The translations under genes and the position numbers were made by a program. From Phaeosaccion multiseriatum (taxonomy: Eukaryota > Protista > Ochrophyta, other classes), in the NCBI GenBank assembly GCA_965112735.1, contig OZ218965.1:868001-932000 (forward strand): DNA of 64,000 nt, in the 5' to 3' direction. The notes under the pieces are model-generated. The model was not told the DNA's origin, ran no database searches, and saw only the letters and a list, made by a program, of their open reading frames with translations. Below are positions 55,078 to 62,384 of the stretch, in pieces; positions within the stretch are counted from its first letter, which is position 1; each line of letters starts with the position of its first letter.

Positions 55078-56105
55078 TCTCCCTTTCTCTCTCTCACTCA
55101 CTCTCTCTCTCTCACCTTCTCCTCCAGCTCGAGCCTCTTCATGTCTTTCTTCTTGATGGTGCCCATATGCCTACTCCTCTGCAGGGCCAGCCACTCATTC
55201 TTGTCCTTCGGGCTCTGGTGCGGCCAAGGCTCATCGTGCCTGTACGCGGGGAGAGTGTAGTCACTTAGCACATCGTCCGTGGACAGCGGACGCCCCCTCG
55301 TGGAGGAGCCGCGGCTTGCACCTCCCGTTCCGAAGAATGAGGTAGAGGAGAGCGAGGCGCTCATACCGCCCCCCTGGAGCCCTGCTCTGGAGGCCGATCC
55401 GGAGGCGGGCGCGCGTGAAGCTGTGGTGTGTGTCGAGGTTAAGGTGTTGTTCTCCTTGAGCGTCTGCAGGGGAAAGGGAGGGGCCCGGCTCTCGTCCGGA
55501 CCGAGAAGAGTCACCAACTCGTTTACCTCCTCTCTCCACTGACGAAGGTCAACAGTTACACCCATGTCGTCCTGCTGCCTCTCTTTTCCTCCCTCCTCAC
55601 TGTCGTCCTCATGCTGTTGGTCATCATCATCAGTATGCCCTCCTCCTGTCCCCCCTTCGTGGTGTCCATTCCGTTGCTGGCTGCTCGTCAAAGCCAACTG
55701 GATGGTCTGCTGATCCTGAGCAGAGAGCTCGAAGCGTAAGTCCTTCTTGGTGATGCCAAGCTTCCTTCGAATCTTCTCTACCTTCTCCTGCGCCACAGCC
55801 TCGGGTGTGGGCTTGTTCGATGGTCGCAAGGGACCCACGAGCCCATTGTAGGGACTTCCATCGAGGATAATATCTCTCCAATCATCGTTCCATCTTCGTT
55901 TCTTGGGCCTCTCTCCAGGAGGATAAGGGAAGGCCACCGTCTGTGCGAGGTTGATGTCTCCCACTGTTGGCCACTGTATGTCGTGGGAGGCCGTTAGCGA
56001 AAGAGGAAGCACTTTCCCTTTCAGACCAAGTCCTCGGCTGCTACCGCCCAATCTCTCGGGGGAGACGGAGAGCCGTCGCTTGTGGGATACTCCCCCCATT
56101 GTCAT
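42082..56105 (-). CDS. Very large IQ-motif and multi-EF-hand protein with coiled coils and one C2H2-like finger (many exons)
   Basis: IQ motifs: [19 protein letters not shown]|[27 protein letters not shown] loops: [96 protein letters not shown]. Finger-like [20 protein letters not shown]. All on one strand and joined by GT-AG introns; the full exon chain was not verified. Confidence 0.8.
50966..51480. repeat. (GGA)n microsatellite of ~500 bp in an intron
   Basis: Direct reading; it produces the spurious poly-E/R/G/P/L/S ORFs in the track. Confidence 0.95.
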
Positions 56106-56417
56106 TCACTCTTCACTCTAATCTCTTTTCATGTCCGTATCATCTCCTCCTTCCCTGCTCTTTCGTCATCTCCTCCTGTTGGAGCAAGACTCAATTTCCC
56201 GGAACGGACCCCCGGAACGGGAAGGCAAAGGCCATACAGCCGTTCCTCTTAACACTGCGCTGCTCTGCTCTCCTATGGCACGATCATGGCACCCACATCA
56301 AAAAGTAACGATTTTTTTGTTCGCGTGTTGGTGCTCCAGTCGAGCTGCAGCCTCTGGCTCGCGCTCCTTCCCTTGCTCTCTCTCTCTTTCCTGTGCTTGC
56401 TACTACATCTCCGTAGC

Positions 56418-57476
56418 ATGCGTAGAAGACCTTGCGCGAAGTCGTGTGGCCTGTTAGTTGGTGTAGTTCTGGTTAGAGCAGCGTCCACCGTGACGAAGGC
56501 GTTCACTCTGAGCCTCAGAGCAAACAACGCCGTCCTTTCCAGGTGTTGGAGCTCTGAAGGCAGGCGATGGAGCTCTCAAATAGGTGGCGCAGTGGGGAGG
56601 AGAAGGAACATGTGCCGTGGAGCACTCAGCAGGGTGGACAGCGGCAGCTCGTTTGGCGACAATGGCAGCAATTTGACAGGAGCCGCCACAAGAAGGAGCA
56701 GGATTCGGGCTCGCCCCGGAGCCTCCCCTCCTGTATCGCGGCGATTTAGTGGACACTCCTCCGCGTTGGCTATGATGGCCAGAAACCTGGAGTCGCAGTA
56801 CAAGAATCTGTTTGAGGATGGAAAGGTGGAGGCGAGCGCGGAAGGTGAGACACCCTCGTAGGGCTATCTGCCTCACCAGATTGCCCTGCATTGCATTGCG
56901 TTGCTTGCATTAAAGCCCGAGCACGGTCGCTGAGCTCGGAAACAGTGGTCTTCCTGGCCGCTCTGCTTACCGTGTCTTCTGTCGCTGAGTGAGAGAAGAG
57001 ATAAGAGAGAGAGAGAGAGAGAGAGAAGAGCTAACCTCTTCACCACCACTCGCCCCTGCGTGCATCACCATGGACTGCCACTGCCTCAGGTCCTGTCGAT
57101 CTTACAGAGCCGATGATGGAAGCCATGAGGCTGCAGGTACAGCTAACCCCTTCACATGTTCCTCTCCCCGTCTGTACTGTGTCCCATCTACTCGCCGCCT
57201 TCTCCTCTCTTCATCGACCCCCAAGGCTTGCAAGCTTCGTCCTCAGCGCCCTCCCCCTTCTTCGTCCCGTGTAACTAACCACCCCCCCCCCCCCTCGACC
57301 GTGGCGCCCTCCTCTCCTGCCTCTCTTTGGGTGCTCTGGGACCCCCCCCCAAGTGGGCGTACGGCTTTCCCTATCTGCCGCGTGGCATGAAGCAGCTCAC
57401 GCACGGCGCTCACTATTATCCGGCCGCCATGCAGGTAATTGCGACCTTCCTTCCACTGCCATCCACGGTGGCGCTC

Positions 57477-57510
<34 letters not shown>

Positions 57511-57838
57511 CTCCTGCTCACTGCGCGCCTGTGACTCTCCTTGTAACCCCACCAGCCTCTCTTCCTCTTACATCATTCCCTCCCCCTCCCTCTTATTCCC
57601 CATTCCCTCTTCTTCTCCCTCTCCCTCTCTCTGGCGATGCTCGGTTGTAATTGTCTCGTCCTTTCAACCCAAAAGGGAGCCGCGGCAAAGGTGAGCGGCG
57701 GCAACACTGTATTTCAGTACGAACGCACTTCGAGCGAGCGATTTACTCTACACTTGCCATAGTCTACTTGCCATTCTCTCTCCGTGTGCATGTGTGTGTG
57801 AGTGTGTATGTATGTTCGTGTGTGTGCGTGTGTGTGTG

Positions 57839-57880
<42 letters not shown>

Positions 57881-60277
57881 ATGTGTGTGCGTGTGTGTGT
57901 GTTGTGCCACCCTCGGCTTCCCTACCTTTATCTCTCTCCCTCCTCCCTCCTTTCCTCCCTCCCGCTCCCAACCCCTCCCTCAGCTGCTCCTGGAGACAGT
58001 CCTTCCTGGAGAGACGCTCCTCGATCCATTTGTGGGTGGCGGCACAGTCCTCATCGAGGGTATGCGAGCAGGCAGGCGGACCTTCGGCTTCGATGTGAGT
58101 CCTCTCGCGCTCTTTGTGAGCACTGGAGTGACGTGGATGCCCTCTGCCGACACCCTGCAGCGCCTCGATGACACGGCTCTGAGTATGAGCAAGGGCATCA
58201 CTGACTATCGGGTATGTGTAAGGGGGGAGGGAGGGAGAGCACTTTATTGACTTAATAGGAATCACCTAAGAAACTGAAAGTGTGAGGGAGAGCTGGAACT
58301 CGTAACTGCGCGTTGATCTGACCCCGCTTTGACTCTGATGTGTGTGTACATGTTGCGTGCGTATGCCCCCCGCCTACCCCCCTGCAGGAGAAGAAGATAT
58401 CTCTAAAGTCTTGGGAGCCCATCCGCCAGGCCATCGCCTCGGCCGTGCAGAGCGAGGAGGGCAAGGAGCTTGCTGTCCCTCTGTGGATGTGCTACAGCTC
58501 TGCTCTCAAGAAGGTGCGTGGGTGCGTGCGTGGGTGTGTGCGCGGAGCGGAGTCGGTCAGAGGGGCATGCAGACACAAAGACAGAGGCAGTGTGTGTGAT
58601 GGGATCTCCTGCGCATCTGCATGGACACCTCGCCCACCTCCCACCCCTCCCTCCCTCCCTCCCCCCCTCCCTCCCTCCCCCTCTCCCACCCCTCCCTCCC
58701 TCCCTCCCTCCCTCCATCCCTCCCTCCCACCCCTCTCTCCCTCCCTCCCTCCCTCCTCTCCCCCCTCTCTCTGTCCCTCCTCGAGCAGGCAGCCAAAGCG
58801 CGCCACAAGTCCCCCCGAGTAACGCCTCCCACTTTCTTCAACAAGGTGGTGTACGCGTACTGCAGCAGGGTCAAGGAGCTGCAGGAGGCAGTGTTGGGGG
58901 AGGATGGCAGCAGACGCTTCACCCCGCCGGTGCTACAGAGGATGGATGCAAGGGCGTTGGTGAAGCCCATCCCCGAGGGGGTGGATGCCGTGCTGACGTC
59001 ACCGCCCTACCCCGGGGTGTACGACTACTTGAGCCATGCTCGCGTGGTAAGTCAGTGATACATATGCCCAATATGCCCAAGCACGGCAGTAGTAGCAGGA
59101 GCAGCAGCAGGAGGAGGAGGCTGGCGGCGCTTAGCCGTTGGCTCTACAGTGCTGTCGAGTGTTTTGTGACCCGGACCGCCCCTGTCCTTTCCCGTCCTTG
59201 CTCCCCTCCTCTCCTCTTCCTGTCCTTACCCGTCCTTGCTCCCCTCCTCTCCTCTTCCTTTCTTTTACCGTCCTTCCTCCCCTCCTCTCCTCTTCCTGTC
59301 CTTTCCCGTCCTTGCTCCCCTCCTCTCCTCTTCCTGTCCTTACCCGTCCTTGCTCCCCTCCTCTCCTCTTCCTTTCTTTTACCGTCCTTCCTCCCCTCCT
59401 CTCCTCTTCCTGTCCTTTCCCGTCCTTAGTCCCCTCCTCTCCTTTGCCTATCATTTTCCGTCCATACTCCCCTCCTCTCCTCTTCCCGTCCTTTCCGTTC
59501 CTTCCTCTGACCTCTCTGTCCATGTCCCCACCCTGCCATGTATCCTTGCGTCCTTCTCTGTCCACTAAAGGTACGATCGGGGCTGGCGGTTTCGAGCGCT
59601 CTCATTCCAGAGACCTCCCCTGAGGACTCAAAGGAAGAACAAGGGCAAGAAGAGGAAGGACGGGTCTTGGTAGAAGGCGCTTCGTTCGCAGGAGCGGCAG
59701 TCCTGTCCGACGCTGCTGCTACGTCTGCTTCTGAATCACCAACTGCCGTAGCGACGACTGCGACTGCTACCACAACCACCACCACTGCCACTGCTCCACC
59801 AATTGCTGCTCCTTCTTGGGAGGGCGCTGGCGCAGGCGCTGCATCGGCCGCCGCCGCCGTGTTTGCAGGTATGCCCCTACCAGAGGGCCGCAACTGGCCA
59901 GAAGCCTGGATGGACAGCGAGATTGGGGCGTTCAAGCAGTTTAAGAAGGAGCAGCACGCCTTCTCCGACTCCTGGCAGGCGGACAACGAGCAATGGGTGG
60001 CAAGGATGAGCGACGTGCTGGCCCCAGGGGGGAGGGCCGCTATCATGGTGCGTGCGTGCGTGGGTGCGTGCGTGCGAGAGGAAAGGAGGGCAGGGGCGAT
60101 GAGAGGAGGCGGTTGGGAGCAAACTCTTGTTTTTTGGCGTTCGGCTCTGTATTGTTCGATTCTTTTTCTCTTGCTACTTGTCCTGTGTATGCTGTTTGCT
60201 CTCTCTCTCTGTCCCTGACTCTCTCTGTGACTCTCTCTCTTATCTCTCTCTCTCTCATATGTCTGACCCATCTCTGT

Positions 60278-60323
<46 letters not shown>

Positions 60324-60559
60324 GTCTCTCTCTCTCTCTCTCTCACTCTGTGTGTGTGTGTTCAACGTCTGTGCCCCTCGCTTTCCATCTCACACCACCC
60401 CAGACCGGAAACGGTGCAGGCGTGGACACCCTTCAAAGCACCTCGGTGGCTGCAGAGAAGGCCGGTTTGAAGCTCATCGCTTCCGTGAGCCTCACGGCCG
60501 CTGGCAGTTGGAGCATGCGCACGGAGCACCTCATCCTCCTCGAGAAGCCCCGCGTCTAG
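56418..60559 (+). CDS. Bacterial-type alpha-class amino-DNA methyltransferase (SPPY, N4-cytosine type), about 9 exons, possible plastid presequence
   Basis: Exons 56418-56844, 57090-57136, ~57226/57300-57434 (LTHGAHYYPAAMQ), 57676-57690 (GAAAK), 57984-58211 (LLDPFVGGGTVLIEG...GFDVSPLA), 58388-58513, 58789-59046 (DARAL...VDAVLTSPPYPGVYDY), 59571-60047 (SEIGA...VLAPGGRAAIM) and 60404-60559 (TGN...EHLILLEK). Alternative in-frame ATG at 56286. Confidence 0.85.
59175..59500. repeat. Pyrimidine-rich ~119-bp tandem repeat in a methyltransferase intron
   Basis: cctgtcctttcccgtccttgctcccctcctctcctcttcc units recur, for example near 59181, 59296 and 59409. Confidence 0.8.
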
Positions 60560-60731: not shown

Positions 60732-62384
60732 ATGCGATCTCAGTACGTCAACTATTTCCGAAGTTTAGTGAGAGCCCTTTTGGTGCATTTAAGGATGGTG
60801 GGTGACATTGAGGAGGAGGCAAAGAGTAGCAGCACTTCCGCGGGAGACGCTGCAGCTGCTCCGCCAGCGGGAGCGCGGGGAACCGCAGATGAAGCAGAGG
60901 CAGCAGCACGAGCAGCCGCAGCATCATCAGCAGCAACCTCTTCTTCAAGGAGGGCAGAGGGGGAGCCACCGACTCCAAAGCGGGTGCGCAAGGAGGAGCG
61001 GCAGAAGGTGCTGAAAGTGGTTCTCCGTGTCACTTTCGGCAAAGAAGGAGGGTCGTTGACGGAAGGAGCGCTAAGTAGCGGGGATATGTTCGAGAAGGCC
61101 ATCCTTCGGCCAATGCTTTCGCAGACGAAGACACAGCAAGCGTTCGCGAACGCGAAGGTTCAGAATATCTTCTGCTGGACTCCGTCACCGTCACCCACCC
61201 ACCCCCTTCAGCCTCACTGGATACTGTTGATTCGTCTTATGCGGGTCTTCCAAAAAAGGAGGAACAGCGGCAAAGACCCAGATTTCCTTAGGAGAATGAT
61301 GCAGGACAATATGAAAGTCGGCAAGGGCACCATCACTGTAGACCCTTACGCCCTGCAAGAAGACGCAAGTGGAGAGGGTAGCGAGTCGGGCAGTGAAGGG
61401 CTTTCGGGATCGACCTCCTCCTCAGTTTCCGCAACCACCGCCGCCGCTCCTGCCACGGCTGCTTCTGCTTCTGCTACTGCTGCTGCTGCGGCGGGGGCAG
61501 CTCCTGCCGCTGCTGCTACTGCTGCTACTCCTACGTCAACGGCGGCGGCCCAGAAGAAGGGAACCCACGTCAACACCGTAGTGAAGAAAATCCGTGCCCA
61601 GCTAGGGCCGACGTATCAGGAGAGCGTGTGGGGCTGGGAAGGAGTGGTAGAGGAGGCCACCTCAGTGCCAACCTACCTGTACAGGGCAAGCAACCTTGTG
61701 CAATTATTGTGGGACAAAAGGGCGGAGTGGGACAAGAAGCCGGCCGGCAAGAGGAAGAAGAAGGACAGCGCGGCGAGGGGTACTCAGACGGGAGGAGCGG
61801 CAGGAGCGGCAGGAGCGGTAGAAGCGGCGGCGGAAGGAGGTACGGGCTTGGAGGGACGTACAATAAAGAAACGGCGGCGCCTCGAAGTGGCCGAGATGGC
61901 GGCGGTGGCGGCGGAACAGGCGATAGCCGCAACGAGGGCGGCAGCAGCAGAACAGGCTCAGTTGGCGGTAGCAGAGCCGGCTCAGCTGATGGCAGAAGCC
62001 CATCCGCCGGCACCGGAGCTTGGAGTCCACCCTTTGTGGGCGGATGTGCATGGGCAGCTCGAGCCTAATGACCAGCACGGAGGAGAGCACGACGAGGGAG
62101 TGGAGGAGACGAAGGGGTCGGGTGCTGCTGAGCAGGTTGGTTGCCAGGCACGTGCAGCACGGCTCGAGCATCTGAGGCTCTACAAGAGGGGGCCTGGCTG
62201 CAAGCAATTGGGCATGCAGGTGGGTGCTCACTTGCTCGTTCCTGCTAGATCTGACGCCTCTCCATATCCCCCCTTGTGCTCTGCTTGCCCCTCGCTCTCG
62301 CGCCGCTTCAGCCGCCCCCGGGTTTTGAGGTGCGCGAAAGTAGCGCCGTGCTCTCAACAGCAGCAGCAGCAGCAGGGTCGGTGA
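60732..62384 (+). CDS. Hypothetical intronless protein (550 aa), possibly a degenerate HUH/Rep-like fold
   Basis: Long open frame with globular-looking blocks (KVVLRVTFG; QPHWILLIRL; VPTYLYRA), Ala-rich linkers and NLS-like KRKKK/KKRRR. The fold assignment is speculative. Confidence 0.55.
   Translation: MRSQYVNYFRSLVRALLVHLRMVGDIEEEAKSSSTSAGDAAAAPPAGARGTADEAEAAARAAAASSAATSSSRRAEGEPPTPKRVRKEERQKVLKVVLRVTFGKEGGSLTEGALSSGDMFEKAILRPMLSQTKTQQAFANAKVQNIFCWTPSPSPTHPLQPHWILLIRLMRVFQKRRNSGKDPDFLRRMMQDNMKVGKGTITVDPYALQEDASGEGSESGSEGLSGSTSSSVSATTAAAPATAASASATAAAAAGAAPAAAATAATPTSTAAAQKKGTHVNTVVKKIRAQLGPTYQESVWGWEGVVEEATSVPTYLYRASNLVQLLWDKRAEWDKKPAGKRKKKDSAARGTQTGGAAGAAGAVEAAAEGGTGLEGRTIKKRRRLEVAEMAAVAAEQAIAATRAAAAEQAQLAVAEPAQLMAEAHPPAPELGVHPLWADVHGQLEPNDQHGGEHDEGVEETKGSGAAEQVGCQARAARLEHLRLYKRGPGCKQLGMQVGAHLLVPARSDASPYPPLCSACPSLSRRFSRPRVLRCAKVAPCSQQQQQQQGR

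Follow-up and report, generated by a model that had tools for sequence, protein, structure and literature searches.

How did an intron-rich gene for a bacterial-type amino-methyltransferase come to be in an algal genome, and what does its product methylate? The question is raised by positions 56418-60559 of a 64,000-nucleotide (nt) stretch of the Phaeosaccion multiseriatum genome (contig OZ218965.1, forward-strand positions 868,001 to 932,000), referred to here as the window; coordinates without a contig prefix are those of the window. An earlier, sequence-only reading had described at this locus a DNA methyltransferase of the N4-cytosine type with the motif SPPY. We find a real, intact gene of nine exons, present as a single copy at one locus in the 67-Mb genome (22 contigs). 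Its family is shared by several groups of algae and appears to have come from bacteria, and we tentatively assign its product to the RNA of an organelle.

Catalytic motifs and gene structure

The spliced protein, 604 amino acids encoded by 1815 nt on the plus strand, carries every motif that the sequence-only reading had listed, each on the strand and in the place given for it, and the catalytic motifs are intact in the order X-I-II-insert-IV. Motif X (THGAHYYPAAMQ, 57399-57434) runs on into a micro-exon and is followed by motif I (LLDPFVGGGT, 58017-58046), motif II (FGFDVSPLA, 58083-58109), an insert of 140 amino acids, motif IV (VDAVLTSPPYPGVYDY, 58981-59028), the tetrapeptide SEIG (59916-59927), motif V (LAPGGRAAIM/TGNG, 60018-60415, split by an intron) and the C-terminal RTEHLILLEKPRV with the stop codon (60518-60559). 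Across 43 eukaryotic, bacterial and archaeal sequences TSPPY never varies at T, S and Y, and its two prolines are kept in at least 90%; D-P-F-G-G-G-T, E-I-G, P-G-G and E-H are also conserved, and in the eukaryote alignment the R, E and H of motif VIII are nearly invariant. The protein has both features expected of the Pfam family PF01555 (N6_N4_Mtase), a (D/N/S)PP(Y/F) loop with a downstream aromatic residue (VLTSPPYPGVYDY) and an E-x-x-L-x-x-K block (RTEHLILLEK). The hexapeptide L-T-S-P-P-Y within 58981-59028 fits the PROSITE signature N4_MTASE, which we take to be [LIVMF]-T-S-P-P-[FY], a motif match that does not by itself reveal the substrate. From these motifs the product is predicted to be a complete S-adenosylmethionine-dependent methyltransferase for exocyclic amino groups.

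The reading frame is open throughout, and all eight introns are canonical GT-AG introns. Exon 1 (56418-56844, 427 nt) holds the start codon at 56418 and the N-terminal presequence and ends in phase 1 at a gtgaga donor; exon 2 (57090-57136, 47 nt; acceptor cctcag, donor gtacag) completes the split glycine codon, and its peptide ...EAMRLQ aligns with the orthologues. Exon 3 (57354-57434, 81 nt; donor gtaatt) carries a eukaryote-specific block, WAYGFP..P.G, and motif X. The frame break that had been suspected in this exon is not real: the AG at 57352-57353 is the acceptor, the exon begins at 57354 and the frame stays open from there.

A first model, with its pieces joined at canonical GT-AG sites, had eight exons and 599 stop-free amino acids, and its alignment with orthologues left a clean five-residue gap at the junction of exon 3 with the next exon. 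The gap is filled by a 15-nt micro-exon (exon 4, 57676-57690; acceptor caaaag, donor gtgagc) encoding GAAAK, the end of the motif X helix, which sits opposite AATAK of Tribonema. Its inclusion raises the phmmer score by 9-14 bits for all eight homologues tested, bacterial ones included, and the 549-nt intron holds only two AG..GT 15-mers, of which this is one. From this comparison we infer that the micro-exon is real. It lies inside a two-copy, 16-nt imperfect repeat (57672-57704).

Exon 5 (57984-58211, 228 nt) encodes motifs I and II and the start of the helical insert, and exon 6 (58388-58513, 126 nt, with GT-AG boundaries) the middle of the insert, where it aligns with orthologues, conserved W and LW..S positions included. 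Exon 7 (58789-59046, 258 nt) completes the insert and carries DAR and motif IV. Exon 8 (59571-60047, 477 nt) contains a low-complexity loop, the block P.GRNWPEAW, SEIG and the LAPGGRAAIM part of motif V. Its loop (59571-59870) is lineage-specific and matches a stretch of low predicted local distance difference test score (pLDDT) in the model of the Tribonema orthologue; on both sides of it the frame runs without interruption into the conserved blocks, and an additional in-frame intron may lie inside the loop. A possible acceptor there, tttgcag at 59863-59869, was rejected because the frame would break. Exon 9 (60404-60559, 156 nt; acceptor ccccag) encodes TGNG.., the C-terminal strands and motif VIII (RTEHLILLEK) and ends with TAG at 60557-60559.

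All but one of the eight introns are in phase 0. Microsatellites or longer tandem repeats fill every intron, and they include a 114-nt unit (3 x 38 nt) repeated 2.9 times (59181-59507), (CCCT)n (58638-58780), (TG)58 (57791-57906) and (CT)75 (60199-60349). The Tribonema minus gene has an intron identical in position and phase to the one after ...PAAMQ, and the introns of Cymbomonas lie elsewhere. The region belongs to a window of about 59% G+C, and the open reading frames there are short and broken. Over the exons, the window does not differ from the contigs of three of the source sample's four DNA runs. In the fourth run (X4) the G6 tract at 60027 in exon 8 is one G short, which would shift the frame; we read this as a homopolymer artefact because the window sequence yields the conserved L.PGGR. 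Apparent joints in the four DNA-run contigs fall in low-complexity introns, with sides of 20-25 nt, and were rejected as repeat artefacts. The gene has no restriction partner, as had been supposed: the flanking open reading frames (55101-56105 on the minus strand and 60732-62381 on the plus strand) are without a nuclease or restriction-modification (R-M) domain.

Distribution and bacterial descent

Databases were searched with the motif I exon (exon 5) or with the Tribonema orthologue P0001 as query, and the spliced protein was compared with the sequences fetched. A full HMMER pass with exon 5 over 1.84 billion representatives returned 1277 matches at an expect value (E) of 0.001 or below, many of which the spliced protein matches end to end. 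Orthologues match the spliced protein at E values of 1e-76 to 1e-116; Tribonema sequences reach about 1e-114 to 1e-116 (Tribonema minus KAG5192551, 5e-114), Phaeothamnion confervicola 3e-90 and Cymbomonas 5e-76, and transcripts of Tribonema gayanum and Prasinococcus are also among the orthologues. Identity to the Tribonema protein is 54% over 366 alignment columns. The run of motifs goes far beyond what chance would give. The second search, with the Tribonema protein as query, added Scytosiphon, two Ectocarpus species, Hapterophycus, Symbiodinium pilosum and many metagenomic proteins. The acquisition was not private to one lineage: besides xanthophytes and Phaeothamnion, the orthologues come from brown algae, prasinophyte green algae and a dinoflagellate. 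In UniRef the Tribonema and Cymbomonas proteins bear the automatic name 'site-specific DNA-methyltransferase (cytosine-N(4)-specific)'. Contigs of the metagenomic orthologues carry ordinary eukaryotic genes, and an origin in giant viruses was rejected on the strength of these cellular neighbours.

In an IQ-TREE phylogeny (LG+C20 PMSF, 68 rows, 411 columns; support as ultrafast bootstrap/SH-aLRT), a single clade (100/99) takes in all 33 sampled rows that group with named eukaryotes, and a bacterial group of 14 rows is its sister (98/98 for the union). Rows without a named source are metagenomic, and their eukaryotic origin is taken from context or length only. With these two nodes the sequence-only reading of a eukaryotic, fully intronised gene of bacterial descent holds, and the tree indicates that the family entered eukaryotes once, from bacteria. 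The window protein groups with Tribonema and two unnamed sequences, then with Phaeothamnion. Because green-algal and ochrophyte sequences are not cleanly separated in the tree, several histories within eukaryotes are allowed, and these may include vertical descent, endosymbiotic transfer or transfer from alga to alga. A non-exhaustive check found no support for a cyanobacterial (endosymbiont) origin; the sister group holds a Pseudomonadota metagenome-assembled genome, and the nearest Atlas cluster is mostly Myxococcota.

The bacterial sister proteins are about 375-410 amino acids long and are encoded by orphan genes. In all three sister contigs (L083:6547-9233, L088:5365-8125 and L091:5423-8188) the methylase directly follows a gene of about 480-530 amino acids, and a Tim44-like domain is on record for this roughly 500-residue product in two of them. 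A Ser/Thr kinase gene lies upstream in two of the three and a GNAT acetyltransferase gene is present in two; no nuclease gene was found in these contigs. A reference-genome scan showed a different setting for a distant bacterial subfamily, with hosts in Chitinophagales, Proteobacteria, Planctomycetes, Actinobacteria and others. Here 26 of 37 loci have a conserved neighbour of about 780-840 (typically 820) amino acids, as at L002:5037-7502, L007:5035-7500, L005:3784-6135 (minus strand), L003:1961-4489 (minus strand) and 22 further loci. The neighbour has no Pfam or PADLOC match. As a lead only, it resembles Atlas clusters, with phage proteins among them, in which GHKL/MORC-type ATPase domains are present in part; together with the methylase it may form an undescribed two-gene module of R-M-like or defence type. 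The algal genome has no counterpart of it (best E 0.0175). The Asgard-archaeal clade of the family sits among transporters and reductases.

Fold and the order of the halves

Profile matches bear out the proposed kinship with the N6_N4 DNA methylases, the rotifer enzyme N4CMT included. Among solved structures, a profile of 43 family members matches TTHA0409 (2zie) at 9e-19 and N4CMT at 1e-13, followed by archaeal Trm11 at 7e-10, M.BceJIV at 7e-9, and then Trm14 and CcrM; a eukaryote-only profile gives the same ranking. Pfam recognises only the motif X-I part of the protein, where N6_N4_Mtase and UPF0020 score about equally. Single exons give only sub-threshold matches, with exon 5 alone reaching 22.1 bits for UPF0020 (cut-off 22.3) and 21.9 bits for N6_N4_Mtase (cut-off 26.7). 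Relatives score higher: PF01555 reaches 39.9 bits in P0001 and 44-72 bits in bacterial relatives, over profile positions of about 135-213 only, and UPF0020 reaches 25.5 bits in P0001, 36.7 in P0017 and 37.0 in P0122, over positions of about 7-57 of 197 only.

Pfam covers just part of PF01555 because the halves stand in opposite order. In the alignments with TTHA0409 and N4CMT, three blocks match in swapped order: motifs X-I of the query fall on the C-terminus of these proteins, and motifs IV and V on the N-terminus. Instead of the beta order (IV-V-VIII, then X-I), motifs X-I-II precede IV-VIII, and the family is therefore a circular permutation of the beta-class fold, an uncharacterised branch of the N6_N4 methylase radiation with the beta-class halves swapped. 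Tandem two-unit proteins of 850-970 amino acids (P0032, P0039, P0050, P0034 and others) are extant, and the whole PF01555 profile (positions 1-214) aligns to P0032 over the boundary between its two units. Such proteins are the intermediate to be expected if the permutation arose by duplication.

The beta-class enzymes of PF01555 (TTHA0409, M.BceJIV, CcrM and M.MboIIA) share with the algal family the H/Y-P-A helix and DPFxGxGT, the TSPPY...Y loop and the L.PGG...GD and E(H/Y)..L..K blocks. They differ in the order of the halves, since X-I come first and IV-VIII last in the algal family, and in lacking the 140-residue helical insert between motifs II and IV; moreover, the algal-family genes are orphans and the algal copies appear to have organelle presequences. 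The alpha class (PF02086; Dam, DpnM and T4 Dam) has the same order X-I-II-insert-IV and a helical bundle before motif IV, but sequence similarity to it is negligible (13.9 bits, E 0.044; cut-off 22 bits) and the 50 best fold matches include no Dam structure.

The Tribonema orthologue P0001 gave a confident AlphaFold model (pLDDT 88, predicted template-modelling score 0.88), in which a four-helix insert separates strand 2 of the Rossmann core from the motif IV strand. A structural search with this model is headed by Trm11, TrmN and Trm14, which form N2-methylguanosine (m2G) in transfer RNA (tRNA), with Z-scores of 15-15.6 over 166-177 residues, 20-25% identity and root-mean-square deviations of 2.0-2.5 Å; Foldseek against the PDB gave weak, unspecific matches (template-modelling score about 0.3). 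The tRNA enzymes and RlmL (PF01170) resemble the algal family in their Rossmann order and in the GSGTllIEa that corresponds to its GGGTvLvEa after motif I, and UPF0020 is above its cut-off in several orthologues. In contrast to their (D/N)PPYG, motif IV of the algal family is SPPYP, and its motif VIII and the block after motif IV are of PF01555 type; no THUMP domain was matched by Pfam in the window exons or in 68 relatives. Sequence and structure thus disagree on the nearest characterised group, DNA methylases in the first case and tRNA m2G enzymes in the second. The sequence-only reading would have been overturned by clustering with Trm11-type RNA methylases, and only half of this is seen: the fold does match Trm11, TrmN and Trm14, but the solved proteins nearest in sequence are DNA methylases.

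Location and substrate

Plastid import in ochrophytes relies on a bipartite presequence, in which a signal peptide and a Phe after its cleavage site are followed by a transit peptide. Read by eye, the window protein starts with a signal-peptide-like segment (amino acids 1-29, 56418-56504, plus strand) that has a basic n-region, the core GLLVGVVLV and an end at ...TKA/F. Next comes a transit-peptide-like stretch (amino acids 30-135, 56505-56822, plus strand) whose 106 residues include 18 R+K, 6 D+E and 21 S+T; it is absent from bacterial homologues, and its sequence is not conserved among orthologues. By the same inspection, the window protein, P0003 and P0152 (a T. gayanum transcript) all have a basic stretch, a hydrophobic core and Gly/Ala followed by Phe at positions 23-29, and in these three ochrophyte copies an Arg/Ser-rich, acid-poor stretch follows the Phe. 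The presequence thus appears to be plastid-type. Green-algal copies carry Arg/Ser/Ala-rich extensions of 100-170 amino acids, bacterial members have none, and the brown-algal models are without the bipartite pattern. Translation may start instead at an in-frame ATG at 56286, 132 nt upstream, which would add 44 residues, among them another, strongly hydrophobic segment. The T. minus model as deposited (L095:3001-4961) starts at an internal Met and is without the signal-peptide-like start of P0152; the annotated N-terminus is probably too short.

We tentatively favour, at a little under an even chance, an organellar enzyme that acts on RNA. The 604-residue precursor would consist of a plastid-type bipartite presequence of about 135 residues and the amino-methyltransferase, and the mature protein would work inside an organelle, most likely the plastid, where its target would be a single fixed site, or a single class of sites, in organellar RNA; SPPY points to cytosine N4 as the likeliest target atom. 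We favour organellar RNA over N4-methylcytosine (4mC) in organellar DNA because the presequence appears to be plastid-type and the accessory domains of eukaryotic relatives are of RNA-binding types only. Among 68 eukaryote-clade members scanned with Pfam, PPR repeats and CCCH fingers are the sole accessory domains, and no chromo, PHD, BAH, PWWP or other DNA-binding domain was found. P0239 (L082:8001-10127, on a 63-kb metagenomic contig) is a single open reading frame of 708 amino acids with PPR repeats (PPR_2, E 5e-24) and the methyltransferase domain. It is the sister of the Symbiodinium copy, and the partial Symbiodinium pilosum protein, its nearest named relative, may be cut in the corresponding N-terminal region. 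The early-branching P0142 and P0150 begin with a canonical C-x7-C-x5-C-x3-H finger. These two sets of relatives join an RNA-binding module to an amino-methyltransferase domain, as do METTL3-type writers of N6-methyladenosine with CCCH fingers and PPR-containing organellar RNA enzymes; unlike them, the window protein has neither a PPR nor a CCCH module, and MT-A70 is another catalytic family, with DPPW.

An RNA substrate is also in keeping with the orphan state of the nearest bacterial genes, in neighbourhoods that are not of R-M type, and with the tRNA m2G enzymes at the head of the fold matches. Insert positions are conserved across all eukaryotes in the alignment, and therefore one fixed target fits better than variable recognition sites; R-M methylases of differing specificities would not show such conservation. 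Furthermore, brown algae carry the gene, yet one paper reports no DNA methyltransferases in them except DNMT2 homologues (PMC13076208). The genome studied here has one PF00145 match.

Several points weigh against RNA. The best profile matches among solved structures, TTHA0409 and N4CMT, are DNA methylases. To our knowledge, no SPPY enzyme acts on RNA. The wider family includes clear DNA enzymes, for instance the REBASE-derived Type II models of PADLOC, phage clusters and one cluster with the Bpu10I endonuclease fused to it, and the PPR and CCCH fusions sit in distant members of the clade rather than in the window protein. The lead of the Trm11 group over generic class I methyltransferases is only 1-1.5 Z, and the ranking is biased because a sequential aligner cannot follow the permuted beta-class DNA methylases over the whole domain. 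The targeting pattern comes from inspection by eye, and no RNA run contains this locus. A serine in first place of motif IV is, moreover, the hallmark of DNA N4-cytosine enzymes (PMC4738411). The literature searched held nothing on this family, and a paper on the archaeal m4,2C synthase (PMC11551388) showed no link to it.

The strongest competitor is an organellar DNA methyltransferase, which would modify the DNA of plastids or mitochondria at a fixed motif, with 4mC or, less probably, N6-methyladenine (6mA) as the mark, and be an orphan like bacterial Dam and CcrM. The conservation of TSPPY throughout the family speaks for it, as do the solved structures closest in sequence, which include a proven eukaryotic 4mC writer, and the above-threshold N6_N4_Mtase scores of orthologues such as P0001. 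In alpha-class DNA methylases the target-recognition domain lies between motifs II and IV, the place that the helical insert takes up here. Related bacterial subfamilies occur in R-M-like contexts, and the apparent plastid-type presequence agrees with this reading. On the other hand, the accessory domains of eukaryotic relatives are confined to RNA-binding types, the fold is nearest that of tRNA m2G enzymes, and very few organellar DNA methylases are known in eukaryotes. In Schizocladia, a relative of these algae, called 4mC and 6mA levels are below 5% and no higher in the nuclear than in the plastid genome, and the authors consider these signals false positives (PMC13076208); a rare motif could escape such an average, and the species may or may not carry the gene. 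On balance we regard an organellar DNA substrate as unlikely, if well short of negligible. The broader proposition that the family writes 4mC on plastid or mitochondrial DNA across algal groups, after a single acquisition from bacteria, and has been missed by surveys in which brown algae are said to lack DNA methyltransferases, is somewhat more doubtful.

Much less probable is a substrate other than nucleic acid, either a protein glutamine amide, as for the NPPY enzymes PrmC/HemK, or a small molecule of the organelle. Enzymes with (D/N/S)PPY do include protein glutamine methyltransferases, and many small-molecule N-methyltransferases appear in the fold search at Z-scores of 13-14. Nevertheless, all sequence relatives above noise are nucleic-acid enzymes, and the PPR and CCCH fusions indicate a nucleic acid.

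A nuclear writer of 4mC or 6mA on chromatin, as an independent counterpart of N4CMT and the Marchantia enzyme, fares no better and is improbable in our view. It is the role that the sequence-only reading brought to mind, and it could appeal to the catalytic motifs, the bacterial origin and the full set of introns. N4CMT of Adineta vaga (PDB 8s9m/8s9n, PMC10406627) and the Marchantia enzyme (cited in PMC12344493) do share bacterial descent, SPPY in motif IV and sequence kinship with the algal family. However, N4CMT has the beta order, whereas the algal family is permuted, extends across several algal groups and has an organelle-like presequence. A signal peptide with a transit-like stretch is not a nuclear signal, and a nuclear epigenetic role is therefore unlikely. 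A chromatin reader is found in none of the 68 relatives, unlike N4CMT, which carries a chromodomain. Brown algae, too, keep the gene while being reported to have DNMT2 homologues as their only DNA methyltransferases.

Finally, the reading as a dead or decaying gene, or as an erroneous gene model, for which one could cite the lack of an RNA run on record for this genome, the micro-exon inferred by comparison only and the one DNA run in four whose missing G at 60027 would break the frame, is very improbable beside a nine-exon open frame with canonical splice sites, every conserved motif intact, 54% identity to the Tribonema protein over 366 columns and three DNA runs that agree with the window at 60027 and give the conserved L.PGGR.

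Reviews name just the rotifer and Marchantia 4mC enzymes in eukaryotes (PMC12344493); writers of this mark are known from two lineages only. Here, an intact and conserved SPPY-type enzyme, apparently unstudied, is common to brown algae, xanthophytes, prasinophytes and a dinoflagellate. With DNA as its substrate, the enzyme would represent a new kind of eukaryotic 4mC mark, organellar and not nuclear. If it acts on RNA, as we tentatively favour, it would be the first DNA-methylase-like SPPY enzyme to do so, unrelated to RsmH/METTL15. In either case, the family displays a circular permutation of the amino-methyltransferase fold for which the tandem two-unit intermediates are still extant.

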